A DNA stretch of 64,000 bases from Octopus sinensis (lineage: Eukaryota), in assembly GCF_006345805.1 (NCBI RefSeq), contig NC_043004.1, positions 92,876,001-92,940,000 of the forward strand, read 5' to 3'. Shown here one piece after another: positions 4,530-47,981 of the stretch. The notes beneath the pieces were generated by a model. The model saw only the letters and a list, made by a program, of their open reading frames with translations, ran no database searches and had not been told where the DNA came from. Numbering within the stretch: the first letter of the stretch is position 1; each line of letters begins with the position of its first letter. A program made the position numbers and the translations under genes.

Positions 4530-4930
4530 GCAGGAGTGGCTGTGTGGTAAGTAGCTTACTAACCAACCACATGGTTCCGGGTTCAGTCCCACTGCGTGGC
4601 ACCTTGGGCAAGTGTCTTCTGCTATAGCCCCGAGCCGACCAATACCTTGTGAGTGGATTTGGGAGACGGAAACTGAAAGAAGCCTGTCGTATATATGTAT
4701 ATATATATGTGTGTGTGTGTGTTTGTGTTTGTCCCCCTAGCATTGTTTGACAACCAATGCTGGTGTGTTTACGTCCCCGTCACTTAGCAGTTCGGCAAAA
4801 GAGACCGATAGAATAAGTACTGGGCTTACAAAGAATAAGTCCCGGGGTCGATTTGCTCGACTAAAGGCGGTGCTCCAGCATAGCCGCAGTCAAATGACTG
4901 AAACAAGTAAAAGAGTAAAAGAGTAAAGAG
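4530..4930 (+). mobile_element. tRNA-derived SINE family A (~400 bp, internal microsatellite, (GAGTAAAA)n tail)
   Basis: A/B-box-like head (TGGCTGTGTGGTAAG ... GGTTCAGTCCC); many near-identical copies in the window; resembles octopus OK-type SINEs (from memory). Confidence 0.85.
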
Positions 4931-5329
4931 AGTTGCTTAAAACCAATGTAAGTGGTGTGGGGAAAGGTGATACATTTGTGAGTACTCAATGCTGAAGGCA
5001 AAAATTGTAGTGTTCCTCTTTTTACTTCAATGGTAATGTAAGTGACTGAAGTTTTGTTTAGCTAACTATACTAAGTATGTTACTTTTCACAGAAGCATTG
5101 TAATTCAAATGACGAGGCATTTCAAGACAACTTCATTTCAGTCATGTAGAAATAATTAGTTTACTATTTAGATATGAAAAAATATATATATATAATGTAA
5201 CCTACTTAGAATAATGACAGATTTTGCCTGTGTATGGACACGTATGCTACATGGCCGTGAGGCATGAGCTGTAACTGCAAAGGACATATGAAAACTTGAA
5301 AGAAGTGAAGCCAGCATGCTCAGCTGGAT

Positions 5330-5744
5330 ACTCTCTTTACTCTTTTACTTGTTTCAGTCATTTGACTGCAGCCATGCTGGAGCACCACCTTTAGTCGAGC
5401 AAATCGACCCCAGGACTTATTCTTTGTAAGCCCAGTACTTATTCTATCAGTCTCTTTTGCCAAACCGCTAAGTGATGGGGACGTAAACACACCAGCATCA
5501 GTTGTCAAGCAATGCTAGGGGGACAAACACAGACACACAAACGCACACACACAAATACATATACATATATATACATATATACGACAGGCTTCTTTCAGTT
5601 TCCGTCTACCAAATCTACTCACAAGGCATTGGTCGGCCTGGGGATATAGCAGAAGTCATTTGCCCAAGATGCCACGCAGTAGGACTGAACCCGGAACTTT
5701 GTGGTTGGTTAGCAAGCTACTTACCACACAGCCACTCCTGCGCC
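5330..5744 (-). mobile_element. SINE family A copy
   Basis: Reverse complement of 4530-4930. Confidence 0.85.
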
Positions 5745-6351
5745 TGTTAGTGTGCACATACAACAAAATGTAAATGTTTTGAGAGAGAAATTGTGTGTAA
5801 GAAGCATCAGTTGTAGTGTGCAAGGGAGAAGTCTGCACTTATATGGTCATATGAAGTGTATGGATGAGGACAGCTGCATAAAGAAATGCCAATTTCTAAC
5901 TGCCAAAGAAACCTGTGGAAGCAGTAGACCTAGAAAGACATGGAAGGATGTGGTGAGAAAAGATCTTCAGTTATTAAGGAAATGAGAAAAGGTCAAGACA
6001 ACTGGTAATATGCTGTACTTAAGGAGACTTCCCCAGCAAAGTAAAATCCATGTTCATGACCCTACTCCCTCCCTCACAACTCACCAATGCTCACCACTGA
6101 TGTTTCTCCCCTCAGTTCTCCCTCACTTGTTCACCTGCCTACTTGTACACAATATGTCCGAGTTAAATCCCTTCCCACAATGTGTAACTCCCACTTTCCT
6201 TTCAAAATCTTGTGAACTCACCCACCTGCCCACTATATATGCCACCCTGTAACTTGAGTGTACGGTGTCTGCCTCCCTCTCTGTCACATCTTCACCATCT
6301 TCCTCACTTCCTTCTCTCCTCCATCTGCTACTCCCCTAGCTAAATATACCT

Positions 6352-15025: not shown

Positions 15026-15084
<59 letters not shown>

Positions 15085-15259
15085 AAATTAGAGACAAAAC
15101 CACTATTATGCAAATCAAACAAAGAAAGACTTAAGCCAATACATAAAATAATTTATATAAATTAAAATTTAACAAATGTATAACCACTACGATCGTTTCA
15201 TGTCAGCACATCTATGAAGTTATGACTTCATAGTTTATAACTCGCTAAGAAGGTTTAGA

Positions 15260-15311
15260 AACCACCTGAAGAATGTCTAAGATGTGCTGACATGAAACGA
15301 TCGTAGTGGTT
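15260..15311 (+). ncRNA. Minimal type-I hammerhead ribozyme, copy 1
   Basis: AACCAC-CTGAAGA-ATGTC(11 nt)GACAT-GAAA-CGATCG-TA-GTGGTT: stems I and II pair perfectly, palindromic stem III, GUA site. Confidence 0.88.
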
Positions 15312-15525
15312 ATACATTTGTTAAATTTTAATTTATATAAATTATTTTATGTATTGGCTTAAGTCTTTCTTTGTTTGATTTGCATAATAGTGGTTTTGTC
15401 TCTAATTTATTATAATATAATATTTTACTATAAATTGGATTCAATCTTAAATCTGATTTTTCCTTGTAAATTTGGATTTATTCCCTAATATTTATTATTA
15501 TATATATATATATATAATGTGTGTG

Positions 15526-15605
<80 letters not shown>

Positions 15606-15780
15606 AAATTAGAGACAAAACCACTATTATGCAAATCAAACAAAGAAAGACTTAAGCCAATACATAAAATAATTTATATAAATTAAAATTTAACAAATGT
15701 ATAACCACTACGATCGTTTCATGTCAGCACATCTATGAAGTTATGACTTCATAGTTTATAACTCGCTAAGAAGGTTTAGA

Positions 15781-15832
15781 AACCACCTGAAGAATGTCTA
15801 AGATGTGCTGACATGAAACGATCGTAGTGGTT
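15781..15832 (+). ncRNA. Minimal type-I hammerhead ribozyme, copy 2
   Basis: Identical to copy 1, 521 nt downstream. Confidence 0.85.
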
Positions 15833-16044
15833 ATACATTTGTTAAATTTTAATTTATATAAATTATTTTATGTATTGGCTTAAGTCTTTCTTTGTTTGAT
15901 TTGCATAATAGTGGTTTTGTCTAATTTATTATAATATAATATTTTACTATAAATTGGATTCAATCTTAAATCTGATTTTTCCTTGTAAATTTGGATTTAT
16001 TCCCTAATATTTATTATTATATATATATATATATAATGTGTGTG

Positions 16045-20840: not shown

Positions 20841-22119
20841 GACACACAAACACACACACACACACCTACACATGCAAACACAACACATTTTACCCTTTAA
20901 AACATCAAATTTGTTATTCACTGATGCAACTCAACCTACATATTTCTTGGTTAACTCTAGTTCATTTCTCATCAATGTTTACAAAAGCCATTAATATATA
21001 TATATTACTGGTATCAGTCATTCCACTTTGATTATGCTAGAGTTTTGTCTTCAACTGTTTCAGACTGAGTTATTTTATTGATCTCTGTTTATTGAAAGGT
21101 TAGGTTATTGTTTTTGGACAAAAAGAGGACATAACTTGACATAGCAATTTACACTGGTAGACATAATCACAGTATATATAAACCCACAATTGGTCAGTTA
21201 AAGTTTAGACAGTGTTACATGACAACTTGCTGGGGCTGCTTGCTGGAGCCTAGCAGCAGGTATTTAAAGGGAAATTTGACAAGACAGTCAGTCGCCCGCT
21301 GACACTCGTTGATGCTACATCGAAGAGGCCAGGGAACAGAAGAAAAAAGGAGAAAGAAGGAGAAAGAAGACATGCACTCAACACCAGAGCTGAAGACACC
21401 TCCGAAAGGATGGGGCCCCGTCAGTCAAAATGGTAGAGGAGTAGGGGCCAAAACCGGATATGGTTCGTCCTGATGATGTCTAGAGCTAACTGGATCCTAT
21501 AAAGGAGCTGTTGTGGTAGCAGACCACGAAACATGGTTGAAATTCCGACAATAGGCTTCAATACTAATAAGGCATTGGTCAATCCAGTGCAGACAGGTGA
21601 CACTTGTGCAATGTGCTGCACAGTAGGAGCAAATTCATCACCAGGTAATTGTAAAGTAAACTTCTTAACCAGACTGCAATGCCTGCATATATAATACATT
21701 TGTGAATCAATTCAACATTGGACTGATCGGTTGTAATGACTGGTACCAGTTAACATAAATACCCTTATACCCCATCACCTACTCATATTCACAGTTTTCA
21801 TTTCATCATAATAAACTAACAACGAAATGTTGCTTGTAAATTGCACTTCTCACATTTGAAGGATGTGGGAAATGCTAATAAAATAACATTCCAAAATAAA
21901 ATGAATTTTTGTTTTTATTCCAAAAAGCCTGTTATTTCTCTTCTTCACAAAGAAATTCACATTTTATCTTTACTCTTTGTTGTTATTGATGTTTAATGCC
22001 AGGGTCAGCCTTGATCTACAAGGCTTTCTATGTACATATATATGTGTGTGTGCATATATATATTATATATAATATATAATACATATGCATATATGTGTGT
22101 ATGTATATATATATATGGC

Positions 22120-23130
22120 AAAAATTTAGATTCGAATGAAAACGTAATTTATAAATACACGATAATAACTTCTAACAATAGCTTTCTTTATTTCGGATGT
22201 TCGGTGGATCTTAAAAGACGTCTTAAGAATCATTTTTCCTCTTTTAGACTCAAACATAAGGCAGGTTGCACAACACAATCTAGCAAAATTTGGGAACTAA
22301 AAACAAAAAATATAGTATTCAACCTAAAATGGGATATAGTTAGAAGGGCAAAACCTTATAGAAATAGTAGGGAAGGTTGTCAACTTTGTTCTATGGAAAC
22401 TTATGAAATTTTAAAACATCAGAGTAATATAAATCTGCTGAATAATCGTCTGGAGTTGGGAGAATCTTGTATACATTCCACAACCCAAACATTTAAATAA
22501 TTTATATAAAAATTGTGAGTATTCCTATATTTTTAAACTTTTAACTTTTTATAATAATAATAAGAAATATACTATACTAGCTTTCAATTTAACTTTCATA
22601 GGTGACTAAAAAAATTTCACTGCAAACTTGAAATTGGAATTTCTTCTAAATCTAATCTAGCTTTAAAATTAATAAGGCTTTCCCCCAGTTATAAAATACT
22701 ATGCCTACTCATAATAATAAGTGATAGGTTTTTTTCCCTTTTTTTCTCTAATTTACACTCTCTGTAAATGGGATTAATGACCATTTGACATTGACCAAGT
22801 TTCTCTCACCAAATAGTAGTAATTGGCATTTTGTTACTTCTAACCTTATAGCAGTTAGGTACAGCCATAGCTTGGTCAGTCACTGGTTGGACTTCACTAC
22901 CTCATATGTTCTTAAAATTTAAATCTACATCTTTGTCTGTATATCTACCTTCTCTATAATGTTGCCACTTGATTTGAAAACTTTTGTATTAATGGAAAAC
23001 CTCTATAATTGGCTGATGAGTACTCTGCATCTTAAATCTGTTGTAATACTTACAACATTTAATAAAATGATGTAGTGCGAAACAATTGTACCAAATTACC
23101 AGAGTCATTCTTGTTGTTTATTTTGAGTAT
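22120..23130 (+). mobile_element. Penelope-like element 3' end: GIY-YIG endonuclease plus 3' region with hammerhead
   Basis: ORF 22030-22500: VIYKY...LYFGC...LKRRLKNHFSSF...SKIWELK...LKWDIVRRAKPY...CQLC..E...LLNNRLEL..CIH, the typical PLE GIY-YIG layout. Confidence 0.88.
23009..23094 (+). ncRNA. Type-I hammerhead ribozyme in PLE 3' region
   Basis: TTGG-CTGATGA-GTACT...AGTGC-GAAA-CAATTG-TA-CCAA, about 510 nt downstream of the GIY-YIG ORF stop. Confidence 0.85.
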
Positions 23131-30032: not shown

Positions 30033-30210
30033 TTATGTAGACATCTTCTCTTCATCAACTACCATGGCAACATCAGATGTCCCTGGTTTTGCTTGGTCAA
30101 TAGCTAGTGTGGCCGACTCGTTCCTATCTCCAACATGTACATGGTTAAACAGCCAGTCTTTAATCACTTGAGACATCAATCCATGGATAGCTTCAATGGT
30201 AGTTTTACAC
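30033..30210 (-). CDS. COPS5: CSN5 terminal coding exon 7 ([26 protein letters not shown]...EEKMST*)
   Basis: ORF track 30033-30257 contains [24 protein letters not shown] acceptor; TAA stop ends at 30033. The seven exons sum to 1089 nt, an intact frame. Confidence 0.95.
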
Positions 30211-30551
30211 CTGATAACATATAGATAGAGAGAGGAGTGATACAAGAGAGAAATCAAGAATTTATAGTGTAATGAGACAAAGACTTAAATATTAACAACA
30301 ATTGCTGCATTGTCTGACAGATGTTCCGATAGTATCAATCTCACCAGCCTTAGAGACTAAAGATCACAGCCAGTATTCCTTAAAACAAAAGTATAATTAA
30401 TAAGACATGAATTAACTATTAAAATCTTAATGATTAGGTTAATCTTACCAACACAATTTGATATTCATCATTATGAGCACAAATTTGAAACAGAAAAGAA
30501 TAGCAGGCTCACTAACAGGACTCCTTTTATTTCTCTATAATATGCCAGAAT

Positions 30552-30903
30552 CGAAATCTATCAAAATCGATCAATGGAAATTGCAGCTGAGTTACCAGTG
30601 CACGTAAGAGAACCATCCGAACGTGGCCGTTGCCAGCGCTGCCCCGACTGGCCTCGTGCCGGTGGCACGTAAAAAGCGCCATCCATTCGTGGCCGTTGCC
30701 AGCCTCGCCTGGCCCCCGTGCTGGTGACACGTAAAAAGCACCCACTACACTCATGGAGTGGTTGGCATTAGGAAGGGCATCCAGTTGTAGAAACACTGCC
30801 AGATCAGACTGGGCCTGGTGCACCCTTTTGGCTTCCCAGACCCCAGTTGAACTGTCCAAACCATGCTAGCATGGAAAGCGGACGCTAAACGATGATGATG
30901 ATG
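30552..30903 (+). mobile_element. Truncated RTE 3' UTR copy in the last COPS5 intron
   Basis: Family match with (ATG)n tail. Confidence 0.85.
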
Positions 30904-31497
30904 CCAGGGGACTACTTTACCAGTTTCCCTAAAGAGTGTTTGTGACTGTGTTCTCAAAGTAGGTATTATAAATTGTTACTGCCATTTTAACTGTGCTATT
31001 CTATCTTTAATGCTTGTCAGTCGTTGTCGACAATGGCAGGACCTCACACAGGAAAAGGAGACGGGTCAAAGAGCATCCAGCTGTGGCTGATCAGACTGAT
31101 GCATGTCAGATGGTTCTGCTGCAGGTCAGGCACCAGTCTGCTGGGAATGAAAGCAAGGGGTTGGCTCTGGACTTGCACAGCCCATGTTCTCTCTCTGCTC
31201 CTACAATCCTATTCTATTCATAGGAGGTGGCACTTCTGCTATGCCAGGCAGGGCAGTCCTGTGCCTGTATTTCTCTAGTAGATAATTAATCACTCAGTGA
31301 CTTAGTAGTAGCAGGATAGGTTATTCTACTAATATCCAAAACAATATTAATCAGAGAAGATTGAATGGCAGGCATTCTGTTATGTAATCATCTGGATAGT
31401 AGGCATAGTGCATAATTTGACATTACATGGAATATGATAAGTAAAATGTGACATACACTAGTACAATTAGTTGTTGAAAACGAACAGATTCTCTTAC

Positions 31498-31646
31498 CCA
31501 TCTTTAGTAGCTTTGGATAATTTGTCTTCTGATTTTTTCTCAAAGGCATCCATGCCAAGCATGAAACCACAGCGCCCCAGTTGTGCTTCAGACTGCTCAA
31601 GTTTTTCTGATAAATCAAAGATCTGGCCAGTTGTATATTCGGCATT
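31498..31646 (-). CDS. COPS5: CSN5 coding exon 6 ([50 protein letters not shown])
   Basis: Manual translation; CTTACAG acceptor, GTAAG donor, 149 nt. Confidence 0.97.
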
Positions 31647-32696
31647 CTGTAAGAAAACAATGCGAAAAAATCAGACAATACATTTCGTAAATATTGCTGA
31701 TGAGACAGAGTTTCATTTTTGTTCAATGATGCACAATGGTTTCAATGCCAGTGAAATACTAGTTGTGTGATAGATACAACACAGAATTGATAGAGCATTG
31801 AACAAAAACCTTGTCATGTTTGAAAAAAAAAAAAAAAAATAAGTACTAGCGTCAACATAAACAATTGTATGTTAGAAAGCAGTGCTACAGCATGACTGAA
31901 ACTAGTAAAAAAAAATGTTTATCTTCCTCTTTATCCTCATCATATTTTAGTCTCCATAAGAATTTATATAAAAAAGTTGTTTTTGAATTCAGAATGTAAA
32001 GGTACATAAATAAATACTGTAAGATATTATATCAACTTCACAACTCATTCTGATATATTACTACTACCATTGCAATCAGCACTGTAACAACAACTGCTTA
32101 GGATATTTTAATAATAGTAGCTTCTAAGATAATAATAATAATAAAACATTGTGTACAGTGCTCAGGTGCACTACAACTCATCTAAAGTGTATGTATAGTA
32201 CATAGGGTAATGTACAAGCGTCAGGAAAAGAACAGTGCATGAGTCTGCATAGTAATAAAAATAATCCTAGTTTTGGCACAAGGCCTGCAATTTGAGGGGA
32301 AGGTGTCAGTAGATTACAACAACTCCAACACTTGATAACACTGAAAGATGATAGGTAAAAAAGAGCTGGAAGAAATGTTGCAAAGTATTTTGTCCGATGC
32401 ACCAATGATTCTGCCAGTTCACTGCCTTAATGATAATTTCTGATGTAAGCACAAGCCCATAAACCTTCAAGAGGAGTACAGCCGATTACATTAACAGCAG
32501 TATTTGACTTATATTTACTTTTACCAATCCTGGAAGAATAAATCAGCAAGGTTGCAGGAAAGAGGGTTAAAACTCAGAAAATAAACAGATGCTACCTAAT
32601 ATCAAGATATTTCTTATCCTGCTCCACCATCGTAATAAAAATAGTAGTAAAGGGGAACAAATGAAGAGAAAAAGATTTTTAAAAAAAGTAACTTAC

Positions 32697-32894
32697 AGCC
32701 AGAAAACTTGATGAACTTAATGTATTGACCCAGTATTTGTTCCAGAGGGACTCCAATAACTTACGATCCAACGATGACTTGAAATAGGATACATCGAGAG
32801 AATAGTACTGCTTGCAGTGCACACCAAAATCTTCAATCTTGTTTAGTGGAATGGACTGATACTCAGATGGTCCCTCGTCTGCAGGTCGATAACC
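32697..32894 (-). CDS. COPS5: CSN5 coding exon 5 ([66 protein letters not shown])
   Basis: Manual translation; TTCACAG acceptor, GTAAGT donor, 198 nt. Confidence 0.97.
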
Positions 32895-34684
32895 CTGTGA
32901 AAAAAGATTGAGTTTTGTTTCAAATACTATTCATTTTATCACATTTCTGTCAAGTTTCAATATCAATCAAAACTTTTCACAGCCTCTACAAATGCTGGAC
33001 TGCATTATCTCCAGGTATTTTAATTTGTGATGTTGTTCTCATTTACCAGACCTATAATCAAAGGTATTCATTATGTATAATCATCTTATTTATGTGCTCT
33101 TCTTTTTTCAGACAGAAGCATGTGATCTGAAGGACATTTGGCAGTTATTTCTGGTAAGTTGAGGATCCAAAGAGAGGTTCTTTCATTGGTTCATTTATCT
33201 AATATTCTTTCTCTCTCCCTTTGTATATAAATATATAATCTTTTTGGCCATGAAAAATATTACCTTGTCTTCAAACAAATGAAGATAGGAAACAGGAAAG
33301 GCATCCAACCATAGAAAATCTGCCTCGTATGTGTGTGTGTGTTAAAGGGTATCATACAATTCATATGCAGGCCACCACTAGTTTCATGGTCTGAAAAGAA
33401 ATCCTACATTTGTCAGACCTAGTAAATAAAATTCCTAAACTACAAACTGAACATTTAATCATGCTAATTTCATCAATATACTCCAAGATCTTCCCCATTC
33501 AGAGAATCTAAGACAGACTTTAGGAACAAGTGCTTCTCAGTAACATCATGTACTTTCCTTCTTGCTTGCTTCCATTTTTCCATACTTATATAGAGTAAAA
33601 AGTTGACTTGTTTCCTAAAGTTGTGTGAGGTTCCTCTGCATCTCTTGCCTAACTACTCAGAAGTGGTATTTGTTTCAAGACTTAGTCACACAGAAAAGGA
33701 TATTATCGTTGACCTTTTGCAGGGCCTCCAAGACAGATGATGAAGCAGCACAACATATAGTAAAACAGGCGCGGGCATGGCTGTGTGGTTAGGGAGCTTG
33801 CTTCCTGGCTACATGGTTTCAGGTTCAGTCCCACTGCGTGGCACTTTGGGCAGGTGTCTTCTACTATAGCCCCGAGCCGACCGGAGCTTTGTGATTGAAT
33901 TCGGTAGGCGGAAGTTACTGCTGTGTGTGTATGTGTTCGTATAGCTGCTCAGTGGAAAGAAAGAGAGGGAAATGCAGCAAATTTTTTTATGATCGTTTCT
34001 TTTGTTATTCGTTTTCATTAGCTTCTTCATACATTATTGCTGCCATTCATCGCTAGATTTTTCTCATTAGACTTTCTTTTATACACAGTCATAGAGATTG
34101 GCTCACATATGCTTTGGTACAGTGAAGCAATAGGACCACTACACATAAACACAAAACTTACAGTGAAACCACATTTATCGAAACATGAGTACTTGATTCA
34201 ATGAACACAGTAGATCAATTTTCAACATCTTTATCACTGTTTTTAATGCCCACTTTTCCATGCCTGAGCTGAATTTGTTGAGGCAGATTTTCCTGCTGCT
34301 AACCATCTCCAATAACTAAACAAGTCTCAGAACACTGGAAACAAAGGACACCATTTGCATGATAGTGACACGTGCTTACGACTATCACACAAAGTTAAGG
34401 CAAGGAAACAGTAACACACACATATGACAGGCTCCTTTTCGGCTTCTTAACTACCATATCCACTCATAATACTTTAATTAACCTGGAACTATAAATGAAG
34501 AGACTAACCCAGTTTGCCATGCAGGGAGACTGAACTTGAAACCATGTTGTTGGAAAGCGGACTGCTTACCACACAGTCACACCTGTATCTATAAACATGA
34601 TATTGAAAAATACTACTGTGCTCTTCAAGGCTACACCATGTTCTTTGGCATTTGGTGACAATAATTTGTGAGATTTATTATGTC

Positions 34685-35120
34685 TGGCCCCCGTGTCAGT
34701 GGCACGTAAAAGCACCATCCGTTCGTGTCCGTTGCCAGCCTCGCCTGGCCCCCGTGCCGGTGACACGTAAAAGCACCTTCCATTCGTGGTCGTTTGCCAG
34801 CTCTGTCTAGCCCCCGTGTCGGTGGCATGTAAAAGCACCATCCATTCGTGTCCATTGCCAGCATCGCCTGGCCCCGTGCCGGTGACACGTAAAAGCACCA
34901 TCCGTTCGTGGCCGTTTGCCAGCTCTGTCTGGCACCTGTGCGGGTGGCACGTAAAAAGCACCCACTACACTCACGGAGTGGTTGGCATTAGGAAGGGCAT
35001 CCAGCCGTAGAAACACTGCCAGATCTGACTGGGCCTGACAAAGCCTTCCAGCTTCACAGACCCCAGTTGAACCATCCAACCCATGCTAGCATGGAAAGCG
35101 GACGCTAAATGATGATGATG
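34685..35120 (+). mobile_element. Truncated RTE 3' UTR copy with about 4 internal units
   Basis: Family match with (ATG)n tail. Confidence 0.88.
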
Positions 35121-35285
35121 ATTATCAATATATAAGACATTGTCATTCCTTTCCCTGTTAACTGAGGGTTTGTTGTGTATCAAACAAAATAGATATTTCA
35201 AGATAGTTACCAAAATCATGTCATACAAAACAAAAGAAGTCATTCACTTTACGGTAGAAATTCTGTATAAAGTCAAGCAACTTAC

Positions 35286-35351
35286 CTTTGGGTAGGTACG
35301 AAAAGCTCCCATATTCACCTTGCCAGCTGATATAGTTCTGACAGGATCAAC
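35286..35351 (-). CDS. COPS5: CSN5 coding exon 4 ([22 protein letters not shown])
   Basis: Manual translation; TTGTTAG acceptor, GTAAG donor, 66 nt, phase 0-0. Confidence 0.97.
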
Positions 35352-35809
35352 CTAACAAAAAAATCATACAGTGGAATGAGTGCTAAATAAATCTATTATT
35401 TCAATAACCAGAATAACTGTGATATCAGCATTAGTAGATATTTTAGTAACAGATAACACACTGTATATTGGTGATGGTTGTAGTAGTTGAAACCAAAGGC
35501 AGGCTTGAAGAAAAAGGTTTTCAACATAGATGGTACTACCCTTAAGGAAACACGGGGCATATTGGAGGGGGTAATGAGGCAATATACTTATCATGCTAAA
35601 TTTTACCTATAGTAGTAATTATATTATATAGAGGATTCAGAGTGGTGCTGCAATTTATGACTAAGCAATGAAATAAATTTGCAGTAAGTCTAAGAGAAAA
35701 CTTATGACGTCTTTTGACTTGATATAGAAAATTTAGCTAGATCACACAAGGCAGGGAGAAGTCATTAACTTGCAATGTATGAAGTAAATTTATATCTTTT
35801 GTCTTTATT

Positions 35810-36140
35810 ATCATCATCATCATCATCATCATTTAGCGTCCGTTTTCCATGCTAGCATGGGTTGGACGGTTCAACTGGGGTCTGTGAAGCTGGAAGGCTT
35901 CATCAGGCCCAGTCTGATCTGGCAGTGTTTCTACGGCTGGATGCCCTTCCTAACGCCAACCACTCATTGAGTGTAGTGGGTGCTTTTTACATGCCACCCG
36001 CACAGGTGCCAGACAGAGCTGGCAAACGGCCACGAACGGATGGTGCTTTTACGTGTCACCGGCACAGGGGCCAAGCGAGGCTGGCAATGGACACGAATGG
36101 ATGGTGCTTTTACGTGCCACCGACACGGGGGCCAGACAGC
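35810..36140 (-). mobile_element. Truncated RTE 3' UTR copy, inverted relative to 34685-35120
   Basis: Begins with (CAT)n; reverse complement of the family. Confidence 0.88.
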
Positions 36141-36224
36141 ATCGTTGAACATAGCTAGTCATAATTTCACTGTTAAAAGCTTATACAATCCGTTTGAGTA
36201 AAATTTATAAACTATCATACTTTA

Positions 36225-37464
36225 TGGAGTCTTGCAGATAAATTGTGACCAATTTTAAGCAGTTGACTTAGTGAGTTTAACATTTCATTTTTTGACAAAA
36301 CTTTGCTTGCTTGAAAATCTAATTCTCCTCTTTATTTTTCAGGTAAATAGCAAAAAGTCATGGAACAACTGAATCATTTCACCATTGTTGCTTTGGCATG
36401 CAATGGGCACACTGCCAATAAAATTGTTAAGATGATGAAACTTCCAAATGCAACAGTTTATTGTGTGTATAAACAATTTAAAGAAGAGGGAAAGACTGAT
36501 AGAAAAGAACACAAGACTTGAAGTGATTCCAACTGTAATCGAAAGTTTCTCGCTGGCTTCAAATGCTCAGTTGAAGCCGACCCATTCACATCTATGACAC
36601 CTCTTGCAAAGAAACACGTGTCACTTTCCACAGTGTCCAGAGCTGTGAACAGGAACCCTGGCATGACTTAGCTATGTTCGACGATGCTGTCACTTCCTAA
36701 CAGCCAAGGCCAAAGCATTCAGAGTCGAGAGATGATCAAAGCTTCTGTTATTCATCAAGCATCAAGGTGCAAGAAAAACATATGTTTGTGAATGAGAAGT
36801 TCACCTTGGACGATGAGGCAAATTAGAAATTCTTGAATCGCAGAAATTCTCAAGTGATTGCATACAACTTTTCTGACGTCCCTACTGTGTTTGAGACTAA
36901 GAATTCTACCTCTGTAATGGAAGTGTCATGAATCCACACTTCATTGAGTCTGGATTAAAGATTGGCACAAAGGAGTATCTGGACACTCTGAAGAACTCCC
37001 TATTATGGAGCAGAAGTTTGGGCTTGACAATGTGGTGCTTATCCAGGATTCTGCACCATGCCATGAGTCAAAAGCAACACAGGCCTTCCTTAGTGAGAAG
37101 GTGCCACTTTTTGAGAAGGCCAACATCTGGCCCAGTAATAGCCGAGATCTCAACCTTCTTGATTACTTTTTATAGGGCATACTTCAAGCATGGACCAGTG
37201 CCTCATCACACTTGAGTGTCAACAGCCTGAAGACTTGCATCATGCATGTGACATACAAAATCAAAAAGGCAGAGGTTGTGGCAGCTGCGAACAAAATTTC
37301 ATTCTCGTATGGAGGCAGGAATTGCCCAAAAGGGTGGTCATACTGAGTAATAAACATTTACATTGTAATAAATGTTACATTAAAATTATATCAAATATTA
37401 TTTTAGTATTTATAACCAGTTTTATGCATCGTAAGAATTGTTTCAATTTATCTGCAAGACCCTG
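36225..37464 (+). mobile_element. Degenerate Tc1/mariner-superfamily transposon in COPS5 intron 3
   Basis: Imperfect TIRs (..GTCTTGCAGATAAATTG) with TA flanks; frameshifted transposase remnants (QDSAPCH, WPSNSRDLNLLDY). Confidence 0.75.
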
Positions 37465-37514
37465 TACATAACATGCATCAAAGAACATCGAGAACAAAAA
37501 AGAAAGTGAATTTA

Positions 37515-37658
<144 letters not shown>

Positions 37659-38595
37659 CTAAATAGAAAACATTTCGAAAGGTAATCAGTTCATATTTGA
37701 CAGATTTATTAAGAAACCTTTACTGTAATGGAAAAGGGAAACAAATTTCTGAATTGAGGTTAGAATTTTGTTTCATCTCTGTGCTTCAGTGTAATTTTCA
37801 GTGAACAAATTCAGCAACTGTCTGCAGCTGCTATATTTTCCAACATACAAGACGAGTTTTTCAGACCAAAATCTGCAGCCAAAGAAAAAAAAAAAAAAGT
37901 GACCAAAAGTTCCACGTGAAATGCAGCAGGATTTGGTAAGAGAGTGATGATATTTGAACGTTTGCAATATATGTCAACTTATATGCTGCAAAATACAGTA
38001 CTCTCAAGTAAATGCAAAGTGTACATAACATGAATAGACTTAAGTCTTCATAGATGCTGAGGGTGGCACATTGAAAATGTTTTGGAATCATCATTGTTAC
38101 ACCATGCTTTAGCATCCATTATGGTAACCTGGAAGCGTTAAAGCCAAGGTATTTAAGAGAATCATATTCAAAATCTCAATCTATAAGATAAGGTGATGAC
38201 TAATCAAACTCCAAAGTAAACCAATACATTTCTGTTTATAAACAGTAAACAATAAGGAAATATAAGAGGTAAAAACTCATCTGAAAGAAACACTAAATAT
38301 TATCAAAATTATAAATGCAAACAAATAATGAACCACACACTAGTCCCCTAGTGAATAAGGAAGTTATTACTCTTAGTTTAGAAACAAAGGTACTTATTCG
38401 GAAGTTAGTCAAGAACTTTGTACACCTTTATAAAAAAGACACCTCATGATAGAAATATTATTATTTCTAAGTCTCTCTAAAGGACACTACGGCAGTGGTA
38501 CTGGATATTAATAGTTATTACCAAGCTAATATGGCAGTCCAAAAATATAGGACGAATGCTGCCGTTGATTAGCTCCAAGAGGCCATTGCTCCTAG

Positions 38596-39910
38596 CTATG
38601 GACACATAAGTGTAAGCTATGGACACATAAGAGATGCAGCAATGTCAAAGGAAGGCTAACTAGGAAGATGGTTTTTGTATGTGGCAGATGCTCAGGAACA
38701 ATAAACACTGAAAATGCTCTGAGACCAACTTCCATCACTTTCCAGGGAGAAAAACTAGAAATAGTTGATAGTTTCCGTTACCTAGGTGACCAAGTCAGCA
38801 GCGGGGGCGGGTGTGCTGAAAGTGTAACTGCTAGAGTAAGAATAGCTTGGGCAAAGTTCAGAGAGCTCTTACCTCTGCTGGTGACAAAAGGCCTCTCGCA
38901 CAGAGTGAAAGGCAGACTGTATGATGCGTGTGTACGAACAGCCATGCTACATGGCAGTGAAACATGGGCCGTGACTGCTGAGGATATGCGTAAGCTCGCT
39001 AGAAATGAAGCCAGTATGCTCCGATGGATGTGTAAGTACCTTGAGAGAAAAGCTGGACCTAAGAAGCATCAGTTGTGGTGTGCAAGAGAGACGTTTGCGC
39101 TGGTATGGTCATGTGGCGAGAATGGATGAAGATAGTTGTGTGAAAAAGTGCCACACCCTAGCGGTTGAGGGAACCTGTGGAAGAGGCAGACCCAGGAAAA
39201 CCTGGGACGAGGTGGTGAAGCACGACCTTCGAACTTTAGGTCTCACTGAGGAAATGACTAGAGACCGAGACCTCTGGAAGTGTGCTGTGCGCGAGAAGAC
39301 CCGGCAGGACAAGTGAGTCCATAACCCGTGGCCTTCTACATGGGATGGAGCCAGCCTACGTATGCATACCTTCCCTTCTTGGGACACAAAACTCTACTTG
39401 TGAAGACGTGTTGAGGCAAGTGAGGATCAGAATCGAAATCGATCAATGGAAATTGCGGATGTGTTACCAGTGCCGGTGGCATGTCGAAACTCTACTTGTG
39501 AAGACCCGTTGAGGCAAGTGAGGATCAGAATCGAAATCGATCAATGGAAATCGATCAATGGAAATTGCAGATGTGATACCAGTGCCGGTGGCATGTAAGA
39601 GAACTTTCCGTTTCGCGACCGTTGCCAGCACCGCCCCGTTTCGTGTCCGTTGCCAGCCTCGCCTGGCACATAAAAAGCACCATCCGTTCGTGGCCGTAGC
39701 CAGCTCTGTCTGGCACCAGTGCGGGTGGCACGTAAAAAGCACCCACTACACTCACGGAGTGGTTGGCGTTAGGAAGGGCATCCAGCCGTAGAAACACTGC
39801 CAGATTTGACTGGGCCTGATGAAGCCTTCTGGCTTCACAGACCCCAGTAGAACCGTCCAACCCATGCTAGCATGGAAAACGGACGCTAAACGATGATGAT
39901 GATGATGATG
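38596..39910 (+). mobile_element. 5'-truncated RTE LINE (RT C-terminus plus full 3' UTR and (ATG)n tail) in COPS5 intron 2
   Basis: ORFs 38668-39129 and 39005-39316 (FRYLGD, LYDACVRTAMLHGSETW, RRLRWYGHV, GRGRPRKTW) run directly into the repeat that ends CCATGCTAGCATGG...AAACGATGATGATG. Confidence 0.92.
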
Positions 39911-40231
39911 ATATACATACAGACAGAAGACTGAGTGGGAGAGAGAGAATTTATTAACTGAATACAATTGGCATAAACACTTTCCCTCTCTTCATACACA
40001 TAAAGAAAAATATGCTCGCACAGAGAGAGAGAGAGAGAAAACAAGAGAAACATTAAAATGTCTGACATCAAATAAGTCAGCATTGAAACAACAATGCCAA
40101 AAGAGTAGGTGCCAAAATATCTTAAACCCAACAGGCACACCTCAGTGCAGCAGTTGCCCCTTGCATTAAAAGGAACAACAAGTGGTGGGACTATCATGGA
40201 ATGACAGAAATAATAATACAATTTGACTTAC

Positions 40232-40466
40232 TTGTTTTGATGATTCAGTATAGGCGGCCATGTACTCGTATGCCTGAGCCTGTGCATTTACTCGGGTCTC
40301 AGTTCCTTCCACAGGGGCAGCAAAACTGTCCATAACTAACATGGTGTTGCCATCAACTTTACCTAGCAAGAGACCCATTACTTCAAGGTTTCCACCTGAT
40401 CGAGCGTGCATGACCATTTTGAGGAGAGCTAGAGCTGAGATTTTTATATACTTGAAGTAATGCGGA
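40232..40466 (-). CDS. COPS5: CSN5 coding exon 2 ([32 protein letters not shown]...[25 protein letters not shown])
   Basis: ORF track 40166-40417 contains the CSN5 MPN N-terminal half. TTTTCAG acceptor, GTAAGT donor, 235 nt. Confidence 0.98.
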
Positions 40467-40554
40467 CTGAAAATAAAAAGAAACAGGGAACCCTATTTTA
40501 GCAATGTAAATACATAAAACAGTTATGCATTTCTTCACAATTACATATATACTT

Positions 40555-40749
40555 ACTTTTACTTGTTTCAGTCATTTGACTGTGGCCATGCTGGAGCACC
40601 GCCTTTAATCAAGCAACTCAACTCCGGGACTTATTCTTTGTAAGCCCAGTACTTATTCTATCGGTCTCTTTTGCTGAACTGCTAAGTAACGGGGACATAA
40701 ACACACCAGCATCGGTTGTCAAGCAATGCTAGGGGAACAAACACACACA

Positions 40750-40797
<48 letters not shown>

Positions 40798-40968
40798 CAT
40801 ATATACGATGAGCTTCTTTCAGTTTCCGTCTACCAAATCCACTCAAAAGGCTTTGGTCGGCCCGAGGCTATAGTAGAAGACACTTGCCCAAGGTGCCACA
40901 CAGTGGGACTGAACCCGGAACCATATGGTTGGTAAACAAGCTACTTACCACACAGCCACTCCTGCGCC
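40555..40968 (-). mobile_element. SINE family A copy, ~90 nt from the COPS5 exon 2 acceptor
   Basis: Full-length match. Confidence 0.85.
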
Positions 40969-41680
40969 TATATATACATATACACATGCATAGACATGTA
41001 TATGGGTACAAACAAAAAGCTTCCAAAACATATTAATGCTTCAAATTTATAAGATAACTGTGATTCACTCTATTGTTGCTCAGAGTTTCCATGTCTTGTG
41101 AATGAGGATAGGTAATAGGGTTTCTGCAGAGCTTCTAATATAAGGCTGATTTTTCTAGTTAAGGCAGATTACATGATTGAAATGGTGACAATAAAACTGT
41201 CACTCAGCAACTATGGAGACCAATTGAATAATCCTTTTCATCTGTCTTTACGTTCTGAGTTCAAATTCCGCCAAGGTTGACTTTGTCTTTCATCCTTTTG
41301 GAGTCGATAAATTAAGTACCAGTTACATACTGGGGTTGATCTAATCAACTATCCCCTCCCCAAACATTTCAAGCCTCGTGCCTAGAGTAGAAAAGAATAC
41401 ATAATCCTTTACTTGGAAAACAGGTATGGGTTGGTGACAGGAATGGTATCCAGCTGCAAATTGCCACCTTACAATAAGTCTGTTTAACTCATGCTAGCAT
41501 AGAAGAACCGATGTAAACGGAACAAGCAATATACATGATATGTGTATGTGTGCATATAAACATCATCATCATCAATATTTTCTACTTTCCAAGCTGACAT
41601 AGGTTGAATGGCTCAGCATAGCCCAAGTCATATTCATAGTTACTGCCCTTCTGGATGGATTGCCCATGTGCATATCATTG

Positions 41681-42935
41681 TAATACTTACAATAAAATGA
41701 GCTTTGACTTTTGCAGTCTATTGATTTATTTATTTTTTTTGCAGATAGTGGTTATATTTGTATTAATTTTTACCCTTTTAAAATGAGTTTAGACTCATAT
41801 CAAACACAGCTATGTGAATTCAAAAGAGGCTTTTCAGCAATGGAATTAACAAGAAATATTTGTTCTGTGACAGGATATGCTTCTCAACACCAACTACTTT
41901 ACAGCTTTTAATGAGTGTATATTATACTGTGGTTCCAGCTTTTGTCAAGTTACAATCTACTCAGCACTACTTTACAGTTTGTCCATTCACCCACTTATTT
42001 GACAAGCAAAAAAATTCTTTGGGTTTTAAAACATCTGAAAAGATGACAGTTGGATGTTGCTAGGTGAGGAAAAGAAGGCAAACACGGAAAACTTCTATAT
42101 TCAATGTCACAATCTTTTCCTGAGTGACTTGGCAATATATGGTCATGCATCATCATGTAAGAACAACAACTCCTTTATGATTGACCAATGATGAATGCTT
42201 TTGCTACAAATTATTGTGCAATGCTTCTAACAACAATATTTGTCTGCAACGACTGTTTTGCTCTGGTTTAACACTTCATGATAGACAACACTCTTCATAC
42301 CTCACTAAACAGAGAATAACTTCTTTCTAGTGCAGTCCTGGTTGGAGGATGGATTCTTCCTTTTCACTGAGTGCTAAACAATGTTGGATTTGTTGAATAT
42401 GATCATAGGGAACCCACTTTTCTGAGAAGCAGTCAGATGTTGCGGGAGACCCACTGACCAACTTTAGACACGTTTCCTAGTTCATGAAGGTGTTTTATGA
42501 TCAAAATGCGACTTGTATCGGACTATTTTGTTAATTCTTGTTCAAGTATGCTTTGGATCATTGTCAACTACGGTTTTCAAAAGTTCAATATTGAAAGAAC
42601 TTGGTCGTCCAGATTGAGAGGAAACTGCTAGAGAAAAACAAGCCAAACTATTGCTGGCATGTCCAAACACTTTAAGCTTCATTACCATTCACAGAACAAA
42701 TCATCATCATCATCATCATCATCGTTTATCGTCCGTTCTCCATGCTAGCATGGGTTAATTCCATTGCTGAAAAGCTTCTTTTGAATTCACATAGCTGTGT
42801 TTGATATGAGTCTAAACTCATTTTAAAAGGGTAAAAATCAATACAAATATAACCTCTATGGTATAAAATAATCTGCAAAGAAAAAAATAAATCAATAGAC
42901 TGCAAAAGTCAAAGCTCATTTTATTGTAAGTATTA
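41681..42935 (-). mobile_element. Mariner derivative with ~190-bp inverted ends in COPS5 intron 1
   Basis: 41681-41870 is the reverse complement of 42689-42935 apart from a short LINE-tail insert. The minus strand retains eroded mariner motifs (SGRP, WVP, HDNARPH-like, SPDLAPSD-like). Confidence 0.8.
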
Positions 42936-43089
42936 TAAAAGACCCCTCAAAGTGATCATGTCAAAAATGCCACAGGACTTTTTCCAACCTTATATATGTG
43001 TATGTATATAATTATTAGTGTATATGTGTGTGTGTATGGAGACAACGACTAGTGGGCAGACCTTTGACAATATGCTGTGTTTGAGCAAG

Positions 43090-44680
43090 TGAAAATGTGG
43101 TCATGGCCGATGCTGGTGTCACGTAACTGGCATAGAAAAGGTACCTTTCAAGCCTCATAGAGGCAAGGTGGCCAATGCTGGTGGCATGTAAAAAGCACCT
43201 TTTGAGTGTGTTGGGCCTCAGGGAGGCAATGACAAATGACCAAGGCCATTGGGCCATGCTTGAGAAGACCCATCAAGCCAAGTGAAATTGTAGTCATGGA
43301 AGATACTGGTGTCATGCAAATGCCGGTGGCACATAAAAAGCACCCATAACACTCTTGGAGTGGTTGGTGTTGAGAAGGGCATCCAGCCATAGAAACCATA
43401 CCAAATCAGACTAGAGTCCGGTACAGCCTTCCAGCTTGCCAGCCCTGGTCAAAATGTCCAACCCATGCCAGCATGGACAATGGATGTTAAATGATGATGA
43501 TGATGATATATATATTAATGTATATGTGTGTATGTGTTTGTGTGTGTTTATATGTATACCATCATTATTGTTTAACATCCGTTTTCCATGCTGGCATGGG
43601 TTGGATGGTTTGACTGAGGTCTAGAAAGCCAGTGACTGCACCAGGCTCCAATCTGATCTGGCAATGTTTCTACAGTTGGATGCCCTTCCTACACTCTGAG
43701 AGTGTAGTAGGTGCTTTTTACGTGCCACTGGCACAGGAGCCAGTCAGGTGGGTCTGGCATCGATCACGTTTGGATAGTGCTTTTTATGTGCCACCAGCAC
43801 AGAGACCAGTCAGAGAATACTGGCATCGGCCATGTTTGGATGGTGCTATGTCAAACTGACATGAAAGCCAGTCAGGCGCACCTGGAATCAACCATATTCG
43901 GATGATGCTTTTAACATGCCACCAGCACAGGAGCCAGTCAGGTGCACCTGGCATCGACCACATCCAGATGATGCTTTTTACATTCGACCGACACAGGAAC
44001 CAGTCAGGGGGTACTGGCCACCGCTATGATATTGGTTTTATTTGACTCGACAGGTCTTCTCAAGTATATCATATCACCCGATGCATCAGGGGTACTCTTA
44101 ACTGGGCCGGACATGCGTGGCTGTGATCTCACTTATATATATATGTGTGTGTGTGTGTATATATATACACACACACACATATATAAATATATATATTATA
44201 TGATCTTCAAGTGTTGGGCCTCACTGAGGCAATGATGAGTGACTGAGACCTTTGGCGATATGCTGTGCTTGAGAAGACTTGTAAAGCCAAATGAAATCGT
44301 AGTTGTGGCCATTGCCAGTGTCATGTGAATGGCACCCATGAAATCATAATGATTGTTGCTGGTAGAATGCCAGGCCTCACAGAGGCAATAATAAGTGACT
44401 GAGGCCTTTGGTGATATGCTGTGCTTGAGAAGACTTGTCAAGCCAAGTGAAATCATAGTCATGGCCTTGGCAGTGTCATGTAAAATCATACTTATGCCAG
44501 TGGCACATAAAAAGCACCCATTACACACTCAGAGTGGTTGGCATTACAAAGGGCATCCAGCCAAAGAAACCATGCCAAATCAGACTGGAGTCTGGTGCAG
44601 CTCTCCAGTTTACTAGTTCTAGTCAAACCATCTAACTCATGCCAGCATAGAAAGCGGACGTTAAATGATGATGATGATAA
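43090..44680. mobile_element. Three older RTE 3' copies in +/-/+ orientation
   Basis: Diverged family matches with (ATG)n tails near 43500 and 44670 and a reverse copy at about 43570-44070. Confidence 0.7.
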
Positions 44681-45564
44681 ATATATATAAGTAAATACAT
44701 ATATCATCACCATTTAACAGCATCCGTGTTCGATGCAGGCATGAGCTGGACAGTTTAATATAGGATCCAATGGATTTAATGTCTACTTTTGCTCTTTTTA
44801 TCAACAACTGCTTTGCAGTGTATTCTTATGTGGCACCAGCATTAGTGAGATCATGCAGCTTGCCTAACTACAAACCCCAAGAGAGGTGACTTCATGCTAT
44901 GAGAGAAGGAGCCAAAGCACAACAGCTATATAGCTCCTCTTGCTGTGGAAGAGCTACATAGCAACTCACATTTTACAAAAGAGGGTGTGGTGATCGGGGT
45001 GGTATTGAGAAGACATAAAAATAGTGGTGATGAGGTGTCTAGGTGAACCCTCAAGACATGAGGTGTGTAGCAGTGAAAGGAGATAGTAGAACAGGGAATG
45101 TGGATAGGTAGAATTTGATAGTGTATGGGAGAATGAGAGATATGAAGTGGGTGAGGAAGTAAATATAATGAATGAAGGACAAGTATTGAGGGATAAGTAG
45201 AAGAGACAGGGAAGAGGAGGAGACAGCTATGGAGATTGGACAGGGCTGAAGGATGGACGTAATGAGTGGCAGATAAGGAATGACCAATAATGCATGTGGG
45301 TGAAGAGCTGCAAAATAATAATGATGATATAGCAGAGAGGAGAAAGATGGAAAAGAGAGAGATGACGTGATTGGGTAAGTTGCAAGAGTGTGAGAAGTAG
45401 AGAGAGGCAGGTGTAATGCATAGGGAGATGAGACATGTGGTGGTAGAGGAAAGATAATCTGATGGTTCAGATAGGTGTTCAATGTAAAATGAGGGAGGGG
45501 AGGACAGTATTAAAAACAAAGAATCAATAACAAGAGGTCGTGGCAGTATCTTGAAAAGAAAATT

Positions 45565-46560
45565 GGACAAAGGGCTAGTGCCGCCTTGGCTGGCTTCCGT
45601 GCTGGTGGCCCGTTAAAAGCACCAACCAATCGTGGCTGATGCCAGATCGCCCCTGGCACCAGTGCAGGTGGCACGTAAAAAGCACCCACTACACTCACGG
45701 AGTGGTTGGAGTTAGGAAGGGCATCCAGCCGTAGAAACACTGCCAGATCAGACTGGAGCCTGGTGCTGCCCCGGGCTTCCCAGACCCCGGTCGAACCGTG
45801 CTAGCGCGGAAAACAGACGTTAAACAATGATGATGATGACAGCACTTTTAGAACTGTGTTTCACCAAGGTGGGCAGGTCATCTCAAGAACCACATATCAC
45901 AAGTCATCATCTGACACCTTGTCATCTGTTCCATGAACTTCAAGGTCTTCAAATCAGCCTGCACATTTTGTGCCATATCTCCCTGGGTCTCCCTCTTGTA
46001 TAAGCTCCATTCACATATGTATGGCACTTTTTCATACAGCTCTTTTCATCAATAACCATTACACATCCATACCAGTCCAGTCTTCCTTCTTGCACACTAT
46101 AACTCTGACTCCTCTTACACTCAGATTTTCTCTCAGCACATTTATGCAACATTCATGCACACTTACATTGCACATTCAATGGAGCATGCTTTCTTCATTT
46201 TCTTTCCAGTCTTCTCAAGTCCCATTACCAAGCATCGTTGCAGTTCCAACATAAGCATCATACAATCTAACCTTTGTTACCAGAAACAGTAGTAGCTCCC
46301 TGAACTTTCCTCAACCCATTCTTACCCTGACTGCAATACTTCCAGAGCTACCACCTAATTATATCTCTTAGGTAACAAAAGCTATTGACTACTTCAAGTG
46401 AGCCATCAAGGCATTTAAAAGTATCTATTTCTTGTGTGCATACAGAATACACTGCTCCATTGCATCTATCACATGCAAAGTTTGTTCTCTGCTAGTCTGC
46501 TTGTGATTTCACTCCACCTTTTGTTCGTCCATACCTTACTATCAGTATAGCATAGAGAGT
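45565..46560. mobile_element. RTE 3' UTR copy (+, 45565-45840) followed by a decayed RTE RT fragment (-)
   Basis: Family match; ORF 45949-46152 has GRLDWYGCV and GRPREIW. Confidence 0.7.
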
Positions 46561-47074
46561 TTATCGCATATTGTGCAAGACCATTTCCTTCAAGATACAA
46601 GAGTTATGTCTTCTTTCCTACAAATTAAGACATTCATGTTTATTAACTTTACCATTAAGATCTCACAGTTCAAGGCTTAGAAATTTTCTAATTCGACCCA
46701 AAGATTCCGCAATGAGAACAAGATCGTTGGCATATACAAATCTAAAACTCCTCTGTGATGGTCATATGTACACATACACACATACATTTATAAACACATC
46801 AACATATATGTGCACACAGACACATGACTACTTTTCCAGGTTTGCATGGGTTAGACGGAATTTGTTGAGACAGAATTTTCTCTGGCCAGATGCAATACAT
46901 CGTTGTACACGTGTGTGCGAGTATACATAAGGACATGTGTATATTAGAGGTATACATAACTGTATACAAAGATGTATTGCATCTGGTCATAGAAAAATCT
47001 GTCTGAACAAATTCCGTCTGATCCATGTAAGCATGAAAAAGTGGCTATGTGTATGTACACATACATGCAATGAT

Positions 47075-47420
47075 GCGTAGCTGTGTGGTAAGAAGCTTGC
47101 TTCCCAACCACATGATTCCGGGTTCAGTACCACTGCGTGACACCTTGAGCAAGTGTCTTCTACTTGTGTCGAGCCGACCAAAGACTTGTGAGTGAATTTG
47201 GTTGACGGAAACTGAAAGAAGCCTGTCGTGTATGTGTCTCCTTCTCCCCGCCATCGCTTGACAATTGATGCTGATATGTTTACGTTCCCGAAACTTAGCA
47301 GTTTGGCAAAAGAGACCGATAGAATAAATACTATGTTTACAAAGAATAAGTCCTGGAGTCGATGTCTTCGACTAAAGGCGGTGCTCCAGCATGGCTGCAG
47401 TCAAATGACTAAAACAAGTA
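47075..47420 (+). mobile_element. SINE family A copy
   Basis: Diverged match. Confidence 0.8.
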
Positions 47421-47847
47421 TATATATACATATATATTGCCATATAATTTTATTTAACTCATATTACTTATACGTCGTATACATATAATACATTTTATAT
47501 ACATATAAACGCAAGATAATGGAATTTTTACACCAAAACAACAAAATACCCCCAAAGAATTTTATCTACTGTTCTAGCCATTTTAAACACGTAAATCTAT
47601 AATATTAATTCTAACAAAGACACAAAGCCACAATTGCAGAGAACGATAAAATGAAAGAAATCCAATCTAATACTTAATTAGTACTCTATTATTCGTTTCA
47701 AGATAAATAAAACACAAAGTTGACAACGGTAATACATTGAATACAGAAGACAACGATTGCCAGGTTTCTTCTGTTGTTCTTCTTTACTGCTTTGGCAGAG
47801 ATTTTTTTTGTTTTTATTCACGTTTAATATCAGTTAAAATGACTTAC

Positions 47848-47981
47848 TTTTTCTCCCATGGTTTCGCTGTGAGTATATCCTGCTGTTGTTTCTTGTCGTA
47901 CCGATATATTTCGTCCACACTGCTCACCGTTTCCACACTATTCTGCAGACACCAAGTCTTGTGCGAGGTTTCGGCATCCAT
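47848..47981 (-). CDS. COPS5: COP9 signalosome subunit 5, coding exon 1 ([44 protein letters not shown])
   Basis: Manual translation matches the CSN5 N-terminus (DEIYxYDKKQQQxILxAKPW). ATG at 47981-47979, GTAAGT donor after 47848, phase 2 matching exon 2. Confidence 0.95.

Follow-up and report, generated by a model that had tools for sequence, protein, structure and literature searches.

Two oppositely oriented LINE 3′ untranslated region insertions flank exon 4 of COPS5 in Octopus sinensis and are probably neutral

In a 64,000-nt stretch of the Octopus sinensis genome (assembly GCF_006345805.1, contig NC_043004.1, positions 92,876,001 to 92,940,000 of the forward strand; herein the window), the 66-nt exon 4 of COPS5, the gene for COP9 signalosome subunit 5 (CSN5), is flanked by two copies of one long interspersed nuclear element (LINE), one in intron 3 and the other, inverted relative to it, in intron 4. 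A sequence-only reading of the same DNA had proposed that this arrangement can loop exon 4 out of the pre-mRNA, with RNA editing as a possible regulator. Our analysis favors a plainer account: the two copies are probably neutral insertions, and the intronic duplex that they form would be hyper-edited by ADAR and spliced away, with exon 4 constitutive and the pair no regulatory device. We prefer this ordinary reading because of the density of the repeat family, the presence of competing pairing partners, the unchanged consensus splice sites of exon 4, and the published literature.

A Near-Perfect Inverted Pair around COPS5 Exon 4

An inverted-repeat search returned two arms of 261 nt (34872-35132 and 35809-36069) that are 95% complementary and 676 nt apart. 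A second arm pair (34681-34834 and 35985-36138; 154 nt, 92%) is shifted in register because the element contains an internal 61-nt tandem repeat. Compared by blastn, the intron-3 and intron-4 copies are 95.4% identical over 324 nt (309/324, one gap, E = 7.6e-148), or 95.6% over 319 nt when the tails are trimmed, values that agree with an earlier estimate by eye of about 95% identity over the terminal ~170 nt, with ~330 nt shared. The bounds first assigned to the copies (34685-35120 and 35810-36140) are confirmed; comparison with Octopus bimaculoides sets them at 34682-35120 and 35811-36160, the second insertion being made up of element sequence (35811-36139) and then ~21 nt of nonelement filler at its 5′ junction. 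The intron-4 copy is separated from exon 4 by 165 nt (35121-35285) and the intron-3 copy by 459 nt (35352-35810), just as the earlier figures of ~165 and ~460 nt had it. Introns 3 and 4 each hold one copy of the family, and neither copy has a partner in its own intron.

The gene was delimited by tblastn with human CSN5, which served as a probe only, and by reading of the splice junctions. The COPS5 locus of assembly GCA_006345805.1 (chromosome CM016866.1, 92,903,033-92,926,981) is identical, as reverse complement, to the window from 50981 down to 27033. The coding region occupies seven coding exons on the minus strand (30033-47981; Table 1), and the spliced product of 362 residues matches XP_029640121.1, COP9 signalosome subunit 5 of Octopus sinensis, exactly. 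Pfam assigns to it a JAB domain (residues 49-160, 3.7e-37) and a CSN5_C domain (residues 248-326, 9.8e-24), and its alignment to human CSN5 (chain 9e5z_E) has E = 1.6e-189. The JAMM motif (H-x-H-x7-S-x2-D) is present and is encoded by exon 3; together with the JAB/MPN and CSN5 C-terminal domains, it identifies the product as CSN5.

Exon 4 reads GTT GAT ... CCA AAG. Its T-rich acceptor is ...TTTTTTTGTTAG/G and its donor, AAG/GTAAGT, is consensus (the slash marks the splice boundary); splice-junction reading upholds the claim that the exon is 66 nt long and of phase 0-0. The AlphaFold model of octopus CSN5 has a mean pLDDT (predicted local distance difference test) of 36.6 and was not used; residues were placed instead through the alignment to solved human CSN5. 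The exon 4 peptide aligns to human residues 170-191, directly C-terminal of the JAMM motif, and is invariant but for one M/L position in 11 COPS5 sequences, molluscan and other. The sequence-only reading had placed this segment in the MPN core. That is reasonable in that it falls within the stretch alignable with the paralogue RPN11, although the Pfam JAB model ends just before it.

The Copies as LINE 3′ Tails

The copies in the window have a common 3′ end, ...CCATGCTAGCATGGAAARCGGACGYTAAAYGAT(GAT)n, and different 5′ start positions, and therefore bear the signature of a 5′-truncating non-LTR (long terminal repeat) retrotransposon. Every copy carries the (GAT)n tail, not poly(A). The 3′ untranslated region (UTR) measures ~573 nt and is composed of a 61-nt minisatellite, a unique end, and the tail; both focal copies fall entirely within it. 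Upstream of the shared part, frame-by-frame translation of the longest copy (38451-39910) recovers a frameshifted open reading frame (ORF) for the C-terminal part of a reverse transcriptase (RT) with a PHD finger, and sequences related to this ORF fragment in databases contain RVT_1 and PHD. In a copy from O. vulgaris (L003), RVT_1 (4.3e-19) and PHD immediately precede the same tail; this copy is itself 5′-truncated ahead of the endonuclease. Judged by their variable 5′ ends and by the RT ORF upstream in longer copies, the focal repeats are LINE 3′ UTR tails. The proposal that they are LINE 3′ UTR copies thus finds its confirmation in the 38451-39910 element, where the RT and PHD remnants are followed by a stop at 39314, the ~573-nt UTR, and (GAT)n.

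Scans of the 64-kb window for tRNAs and Rfam families found nothing, and we accordingly regard the element as a LINE without a tRNA-derived head. Pfam searches of ten long ORFs in the window gave no RT and no endonuclease. More distant relatives (P0270 and P0346; 56-59% identity) combine Exo_endo_phos (PF03372) with RVT_1 (PF00078), and because of this combination the family appears to be of the apurinic/apyrimidinic endonuclease (APE) type.

Membership of the RTE clade is plausible; the APE-type endonuclease of the relatives and the microsatellite tail speak for it. Microsatellite 3′ tails are typical of RTE elements, and in RTE-2_OV of O. vulgaris microsatellite makes up most of the ~600-nt 3′ UTR (PMC9115989). 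The designation "RTE" fits because the family shares the microsatellite tail and a repeat-rich UTR of ~600 nt with RTE-2_OV, and because its C-terminal fragment is similar to lepidopteran RT proteins and one plant RT protein, a similarity that serves as a lead only. The likeness to RTE-2_OV (Petrosino et al. 2022, PMC9115989) extends to frequent 5′ truncation and to recent activity in the O. vulgaris/sinensis lineage. Compared by description, the two differ in that the LINE studied here has a PHD finger between the RT and the C-terminal domain, a feature unmentioned for RTE-2_OV. This PHD finger sits between the RT core and the C-terminal domain both in the window (38451-39314) and in the O. 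vulgaris copy (L003 5977-6879), and many metagenomic relatives share the pairing of RVT_1 with PHD.

A separate feature of the family is a donor-like CUCC/GUGAGU downstream of a CAG, found on the gene strand at ~34960-34975 and recurring in every antisense LINE copy. Six antisense copies lie within COPS5, and the motif might allow exonization.

Two Insertions after the Split from O. bimaculoides

The O. bimaculoides orthologue (L001) was compared with the window by a scored colinear chain of alignments. It is colinear with introns 3 and 4 at 88-92% identity, and both copies are absent from it. Where the intron-4 copy is missing, its sequence is TTGATAAT/AAATCTC, with ATAAT present once (L001 9474-9478); in O. 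sinensis, these 5 bp stand at both sides of the copy as a target-site duplication. Where the intron-3 copy is missing, the two flanks adjoin each other (L001 8762 and 8769), and 6 nt are replaced in O. sinensis. These separate empty sites imply two insertions after the species split and not an inverted duplication. Comparison of the orthologous introns thus shows that both copies entered the O. sinensis lineage once it had separated from O. bimaculoides. Their mutual divergence of ~4.5%, set against an interspecies intron divergence of 8-12%, suggests that insertion belongs to about the more recent half of the lineage's history.

The 95% identity of the copies is no sign of local duplication, because other, unrelated young copies in the window are 93-96% alike, a level set by how old the subfamily is. 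The separate empty sites and this subfamily-typical identity thus rule out both a local inverted duplication and gene conversion. The copies differ by ~14 substitutions and one indel, mostly transitions and many at CpG. We also considered A-to-G differences between the genomic copies as a sign of editing and rejected them as such, since ordinary transitions, often at CpG, account for them.

The window is rich in related copies. By blastn the family has ~19 copies in its 64 kb, and the window contains 16 inverted pairs, each at least 100 nt long, whose arms are within 5 kb of one another. Of the five internal COPS5 exons, three have LINE copies in opposite orientation on their two sides, and every copy of the family inside COPS5 is lineage-specific relative to O. 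bimaculoides. The COPS5 coding span is longer in O. sinensis than in O. bimaculoides (17.95 and 10.45 kb, respectively) because of these lineage-specific copies and other insertions, an expansion that agrees with the recent LINE/SINE (short interspersed nuclear element) burst reported for O. vulgaris (PMC13282606). An inverted arrangement around an exon follows naturally from so dense and so recently active a repeat family.

Predicted Pairing in the Pre-mRNA

Folding of a 1481-nt pre-mRNA segment gives a predicted minimum free energy of -861 kcal/mol and a single, almost unbroken stem of ~320 bp, closed over a 676-nt loop that holds exon 4. For pairing between the intron-3 and intron-4 arms the predicted free energy change relative to the arms alone (ddG) is -441 kcal/mol, with 320 intermolecular pairs. 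The pre-mRNA is therefore predicted to form a near-perfect ~320-bp duplex enclosing exon 4 in its loop, and the structural premise of the earlier proposal, that the pre-mRNA can loop out exon 4, is borne out in silico only. Both introns flanking the exon contain reverse-complementary repeats with a stable predicted duplex; as a candidate ADAR substrate, the predicted structure offers more than 100 bp of near-perfect double-stranded RNA with both arms in introns of one gene.

The intron-3 arm has other potential partners. With the intron-2 copy it is predicted to pair over 215 nt at 95% (35809-36023; ddG -335 kcal/mol, 283 bp), a duplex that brackets exon 3, and with the intron-6 copy (Table 1) the predicted ddG is -277 kcal/mol. 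None of the focal pairing should mask the exon 4 splice sites, since the arms lie 165 and 459 nt away. Exon 4 and both of its splice sites are identical in O. bimaculoides, which is free of the insertions.

Consequences for Splicing

The events that we favor would be as follows. Two independent, 5′-truncated retrotranspositions of one young, apparently APE-type, RTE-like LINE left one copy in intron 3 and another, inverted relative to it, in intron 4, and the two intronic copies would pair in the pre-mRNA into the ~320-bp duplex around exon 4. ADAR would hyper-edit this duplex, which would then leave with the introns, and exon 4 would still be spliced constitutively, with at most trace skipping.

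Published data from octopus are in keeping with such a course. O. vulgaris reads mapped on GCF_006345805.1 show editing mostly in introns and UTRs, at hairpins; exon skipping in octopus occurs at unremarkable rates; and the high-confidence circular RNAs (circRNAs) found across 18 O. vulgaris tissues number only 296, a low count that the authors ascribe to the melting of intronic duplexes by ADAR (PMC9699675). In metazoans at large, O. bimaculoides among them, young and nearby inverted repeats are the main ADAR targets (PMC9989829), so the assertion in the sequence-only reading that inverted repeats are ADAR targets is sound as a general statement. The focal pair resembles the substrates described by Zhang et al. 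2023 (PMC9989829) in being young, ~4.5% diverged, 676 nt apart, and capable of ~320 bp of pairing; in its predicted pairing we see no structural difference from that class.

Some observations weigh against neutrality of the pair. Among the inverted pairs in the window whose arms are within 5 kb, it is the longest; it lies close to a very short exon (66 nt), and very short exons are generally more context-sensitive. In addition, a constitutive exon can become alternative under the influence of an inverted Alu pair (Lev-Maor et al. 2008, PMC2533698). In both systems, one retroposon family has contributed two copies of opposite orientation to introns of the same pre-mRNA, near an exon, as lineage-specific insertions with a long, near-perfect predicted duplex (PMC2533698). 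The octopus elements differ from inverted Alus in that they are 5′-truncated LINE 3′ UTRs and not SINEs, and their arms lie in different introns.

In the first alternative, the duplex would loop out exon 4 often enough to yield a meaningful amount of an mRNA joining exon 3 to exon 5, which would encode a CSN5 that lacks 22 residues and is probably inactive, ADAR editing tuning the ratio of the two forms. The strong predicted stem places exon 4 in its 676-nt loop; the exon's length and 0-0 phase would keep the frame and let the transcript escape nonsense-mediated decay; the residues lost are conserved and directly follow the JAMM motif; and inverted Alus provide the precedent for a constitutive exon made alternative (PMC2533698). 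We nevertheless consider this outcome unlikely. The exon has consensus splice sites, the same as in the insertion-free orthologue, and selection would act against appreciable loss of function in an essential, highly conserved gene. The intron-3 arm, moreover, has competing partners in introns 2 and 6, and the high ADAR activity of coleoids would be expected to melt such stems (PMC9699675).

Recorded products also speak, if faintly, against skipping. XP_029640121.1 has a RefSeq name without an isoform number and is the single product listed, which is weak evidence for a single COPS5 product; in this weak look-up no skipped isoform is recorded. Neither an exon-4-less nor an exon-3-less product has an exact match in a collection of 15 billion proteins, a result that is uninformative because truncated canonical forms are absent from it too; the canonical COPS5 protein is recorded there solely from genome annotation.

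A more elaborate version would make exon 4 (or exon 3, by way of the intron-2 copy) a tissue-regulated cassette in O. sinensis/vulgaris, with ADAR editing setting the dose of a catalytically dead CSN5. We hold this to be a long shot. Were it true, the in-frame dead CSN5 could join the signalosome and damp cullin deneddylation, and an essential gene would have acquired a species-specific splicing switch tuned by editing.

The intron-3 copy might instead prefer the intron-2 copy, which is transcribed earlier, so that exon 3 (129 nt, in-frame, and the source of the JAMM motif) would be looped out in place of exon 4. Complementarity of 95% over 215 nt and a predicted ddG of -335 kcal/mol with 283 pairs speak for such a structure, as do the order of transcription and the 0-0 phase of exon 3. 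Its arms, however, are 3.4-3.7 kb apart, compared with 676 nt for the focal pair; its duplex is weaker; and intron 2 may be gone before the intron-3 copy is made. The arguments from splice sites and selection apply as they do to exon 4, and no exon-3-less product is recorded (the uninformative look-up mentioned above). On balance we judge this highly improbable.

A 66-nt circular RNA made by back-splicing of exon 4 is unlikely on our analysis, and we would give it very little credence. Flanking reverse-complementary repeats are a classic driver of circularization (PMC4201285), and no partner of the same family competes within intron 3 or intron 4. Flanking repeats alone, on the other hand, are no predictor of circularization; ZKSCAN1 reporter exons of 400 nt or less were circularized inefficiently, if at all; and in some cases stronger hairpins inhibit the reaction (PMC4201285). 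The octopus locus is like the system of Liang and Wilusz 2014 (PMC4201285) in having reverse-complementary repeats in both flanking introns, by which the splice sites of the enclosed exon would be brought together; it is unlike it in that its 66-nt exon is far under the size that underwent circularization in the ZKSCAN1 reporter. Octopus circRNAs are, besides, few: the 296 high-confidence circRNAs of the 18 O. vulgaris tissues are the count for which the authors invoke ADAR antagonism (PMC9699675). Entries for COPS5 or a circRNA table were not found in the accessible portion of that study's supplementary files.

That the inverted pair is an assembly artifact or a local inverted duplication is effectively refuted: long-read assemblies do occasionally produce inverted duplicates, but the copies differ at ~15 positions and in their 5′ truncation points, their similarity is confined to the element and ends at its boundaries, and each has its own empty site between colinear flanks 88-90% identical to O. 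bimaculoides.

Significance

The COPS5 locus is a well-documented case of a common situation, in which inverted young retroposon copies occupy the introns on either side of an exon. It is also a natural experiment. O. bimaculoides has the same exon 4 and the same splice sites with neither insertion, and a comparison of O. sinensis/vulgaris with O. bimaculoides would gauge the effect of a 320-bp intronic duplex on a short exon in a heavily editing animal. If exon 4 is not skipped, as we expect of neutral insertions, the locus would add to the evidence that octopus splicing tolerates intronic duplexes; if skipping is substantial, an essential and deeply conserved enzyme would owe a new isoform to a transposon burst.

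Table 1. COPS5 coding exons and LINE copies in introns of the gene (window coordinates)
Feature	Position	Strand	Details
COPS5 coding exon 1	47981-47848	-	tblastn and splice junctions
COPS5 coding exon 2	40466-40232	-	tblastn and splice junctions
COPS5 coding exon 3	37658-37530	-	129 nt, phase 0-0, encodes JAMM motif
COPS5 coding exon 4	35351-35286	-	66 nt, 22 codons, phase 0-0, residues 167-188
COPS5 coding exon 5	32894-32697	-	tblastn and splice junctions
COPS5 coding exon 6	31646-31498	-	tblastn and splice junctions
COPS5 coding exon 7	30210-30033	-	tblastn and splice junctions
Longest LINE copy, 5′-truncated, intron 2	38451-39910	+	1.46 kb; RT C-terminal and PHD remnants, stop at 39314, UTR, (GAT)n
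LINE 3′ UTR copy, 5′-truncated, intron 3	35811-36160	-	sense to COPS5; ~2.5 minisatellite units, unique end, (GAT)n
LINE 3′ UTR copy, 5′-truncated, intron 4	34682-35120	+	antisense to COPS5; ~4.5 minisatellite units, ~190-nt unique end, (GAT)n
LINE-tail copy, lineage-specific, intron 6	30549-30952	+	weaker partner of intron-3 copy, 208 nt at 88%; would bracket exons 4-6

Other Features of the Window

Several further repeats lie within COPS5. Intron 1 holds a 5.2-kb block (41422-46644) that is absent in O. bimaculoides and contains five LINE-tail copies in both orientations, among them an adjacent inverted pair 45 nt apart (43321-43514, plus strand; 43560-44006, minus strand). Intron 4 contains a 203-nt SINE with tRNA-like A and B boxes (33768-33970), for which O. 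bimaculoides has an empty site, and an older inverted relative of it in the same intron (34489-34558; 73% over 70 nt, 619 nt away). In intron 3, at ~36340-37450 on the plus strand, a degenerate Tc1/mariner-like transposase frame matches HTH_23 (4e-06) and, weakly, DDE_3 (0.0024). This transposon is older than the species split, because the region aligns with O. bimaculoides.

Outside the gene, two tandem perfect hairpin units, ~521 nt apart, lie within a (TA)n/(TG)n microsatellite at 15074-15940. The unit has 140-nt arms of 100% complementarity and a 66-nt spacer, and could be a foldback element, an element resembling a miniature inverted-repeat transposable element, or a hairpin-RNA locus. 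A different repeat forms a strong inverted pair at 4524-5747, with arms of 204-228 nt that are 90-92% complementary and 416-816 nt apart. Finally, an ORF at 22030-22500 (plus strand) encodes a GIY-YIG nuclease domain (Pfam, 1.2e-05) and is possibly the remnant of a Penelope-like element.

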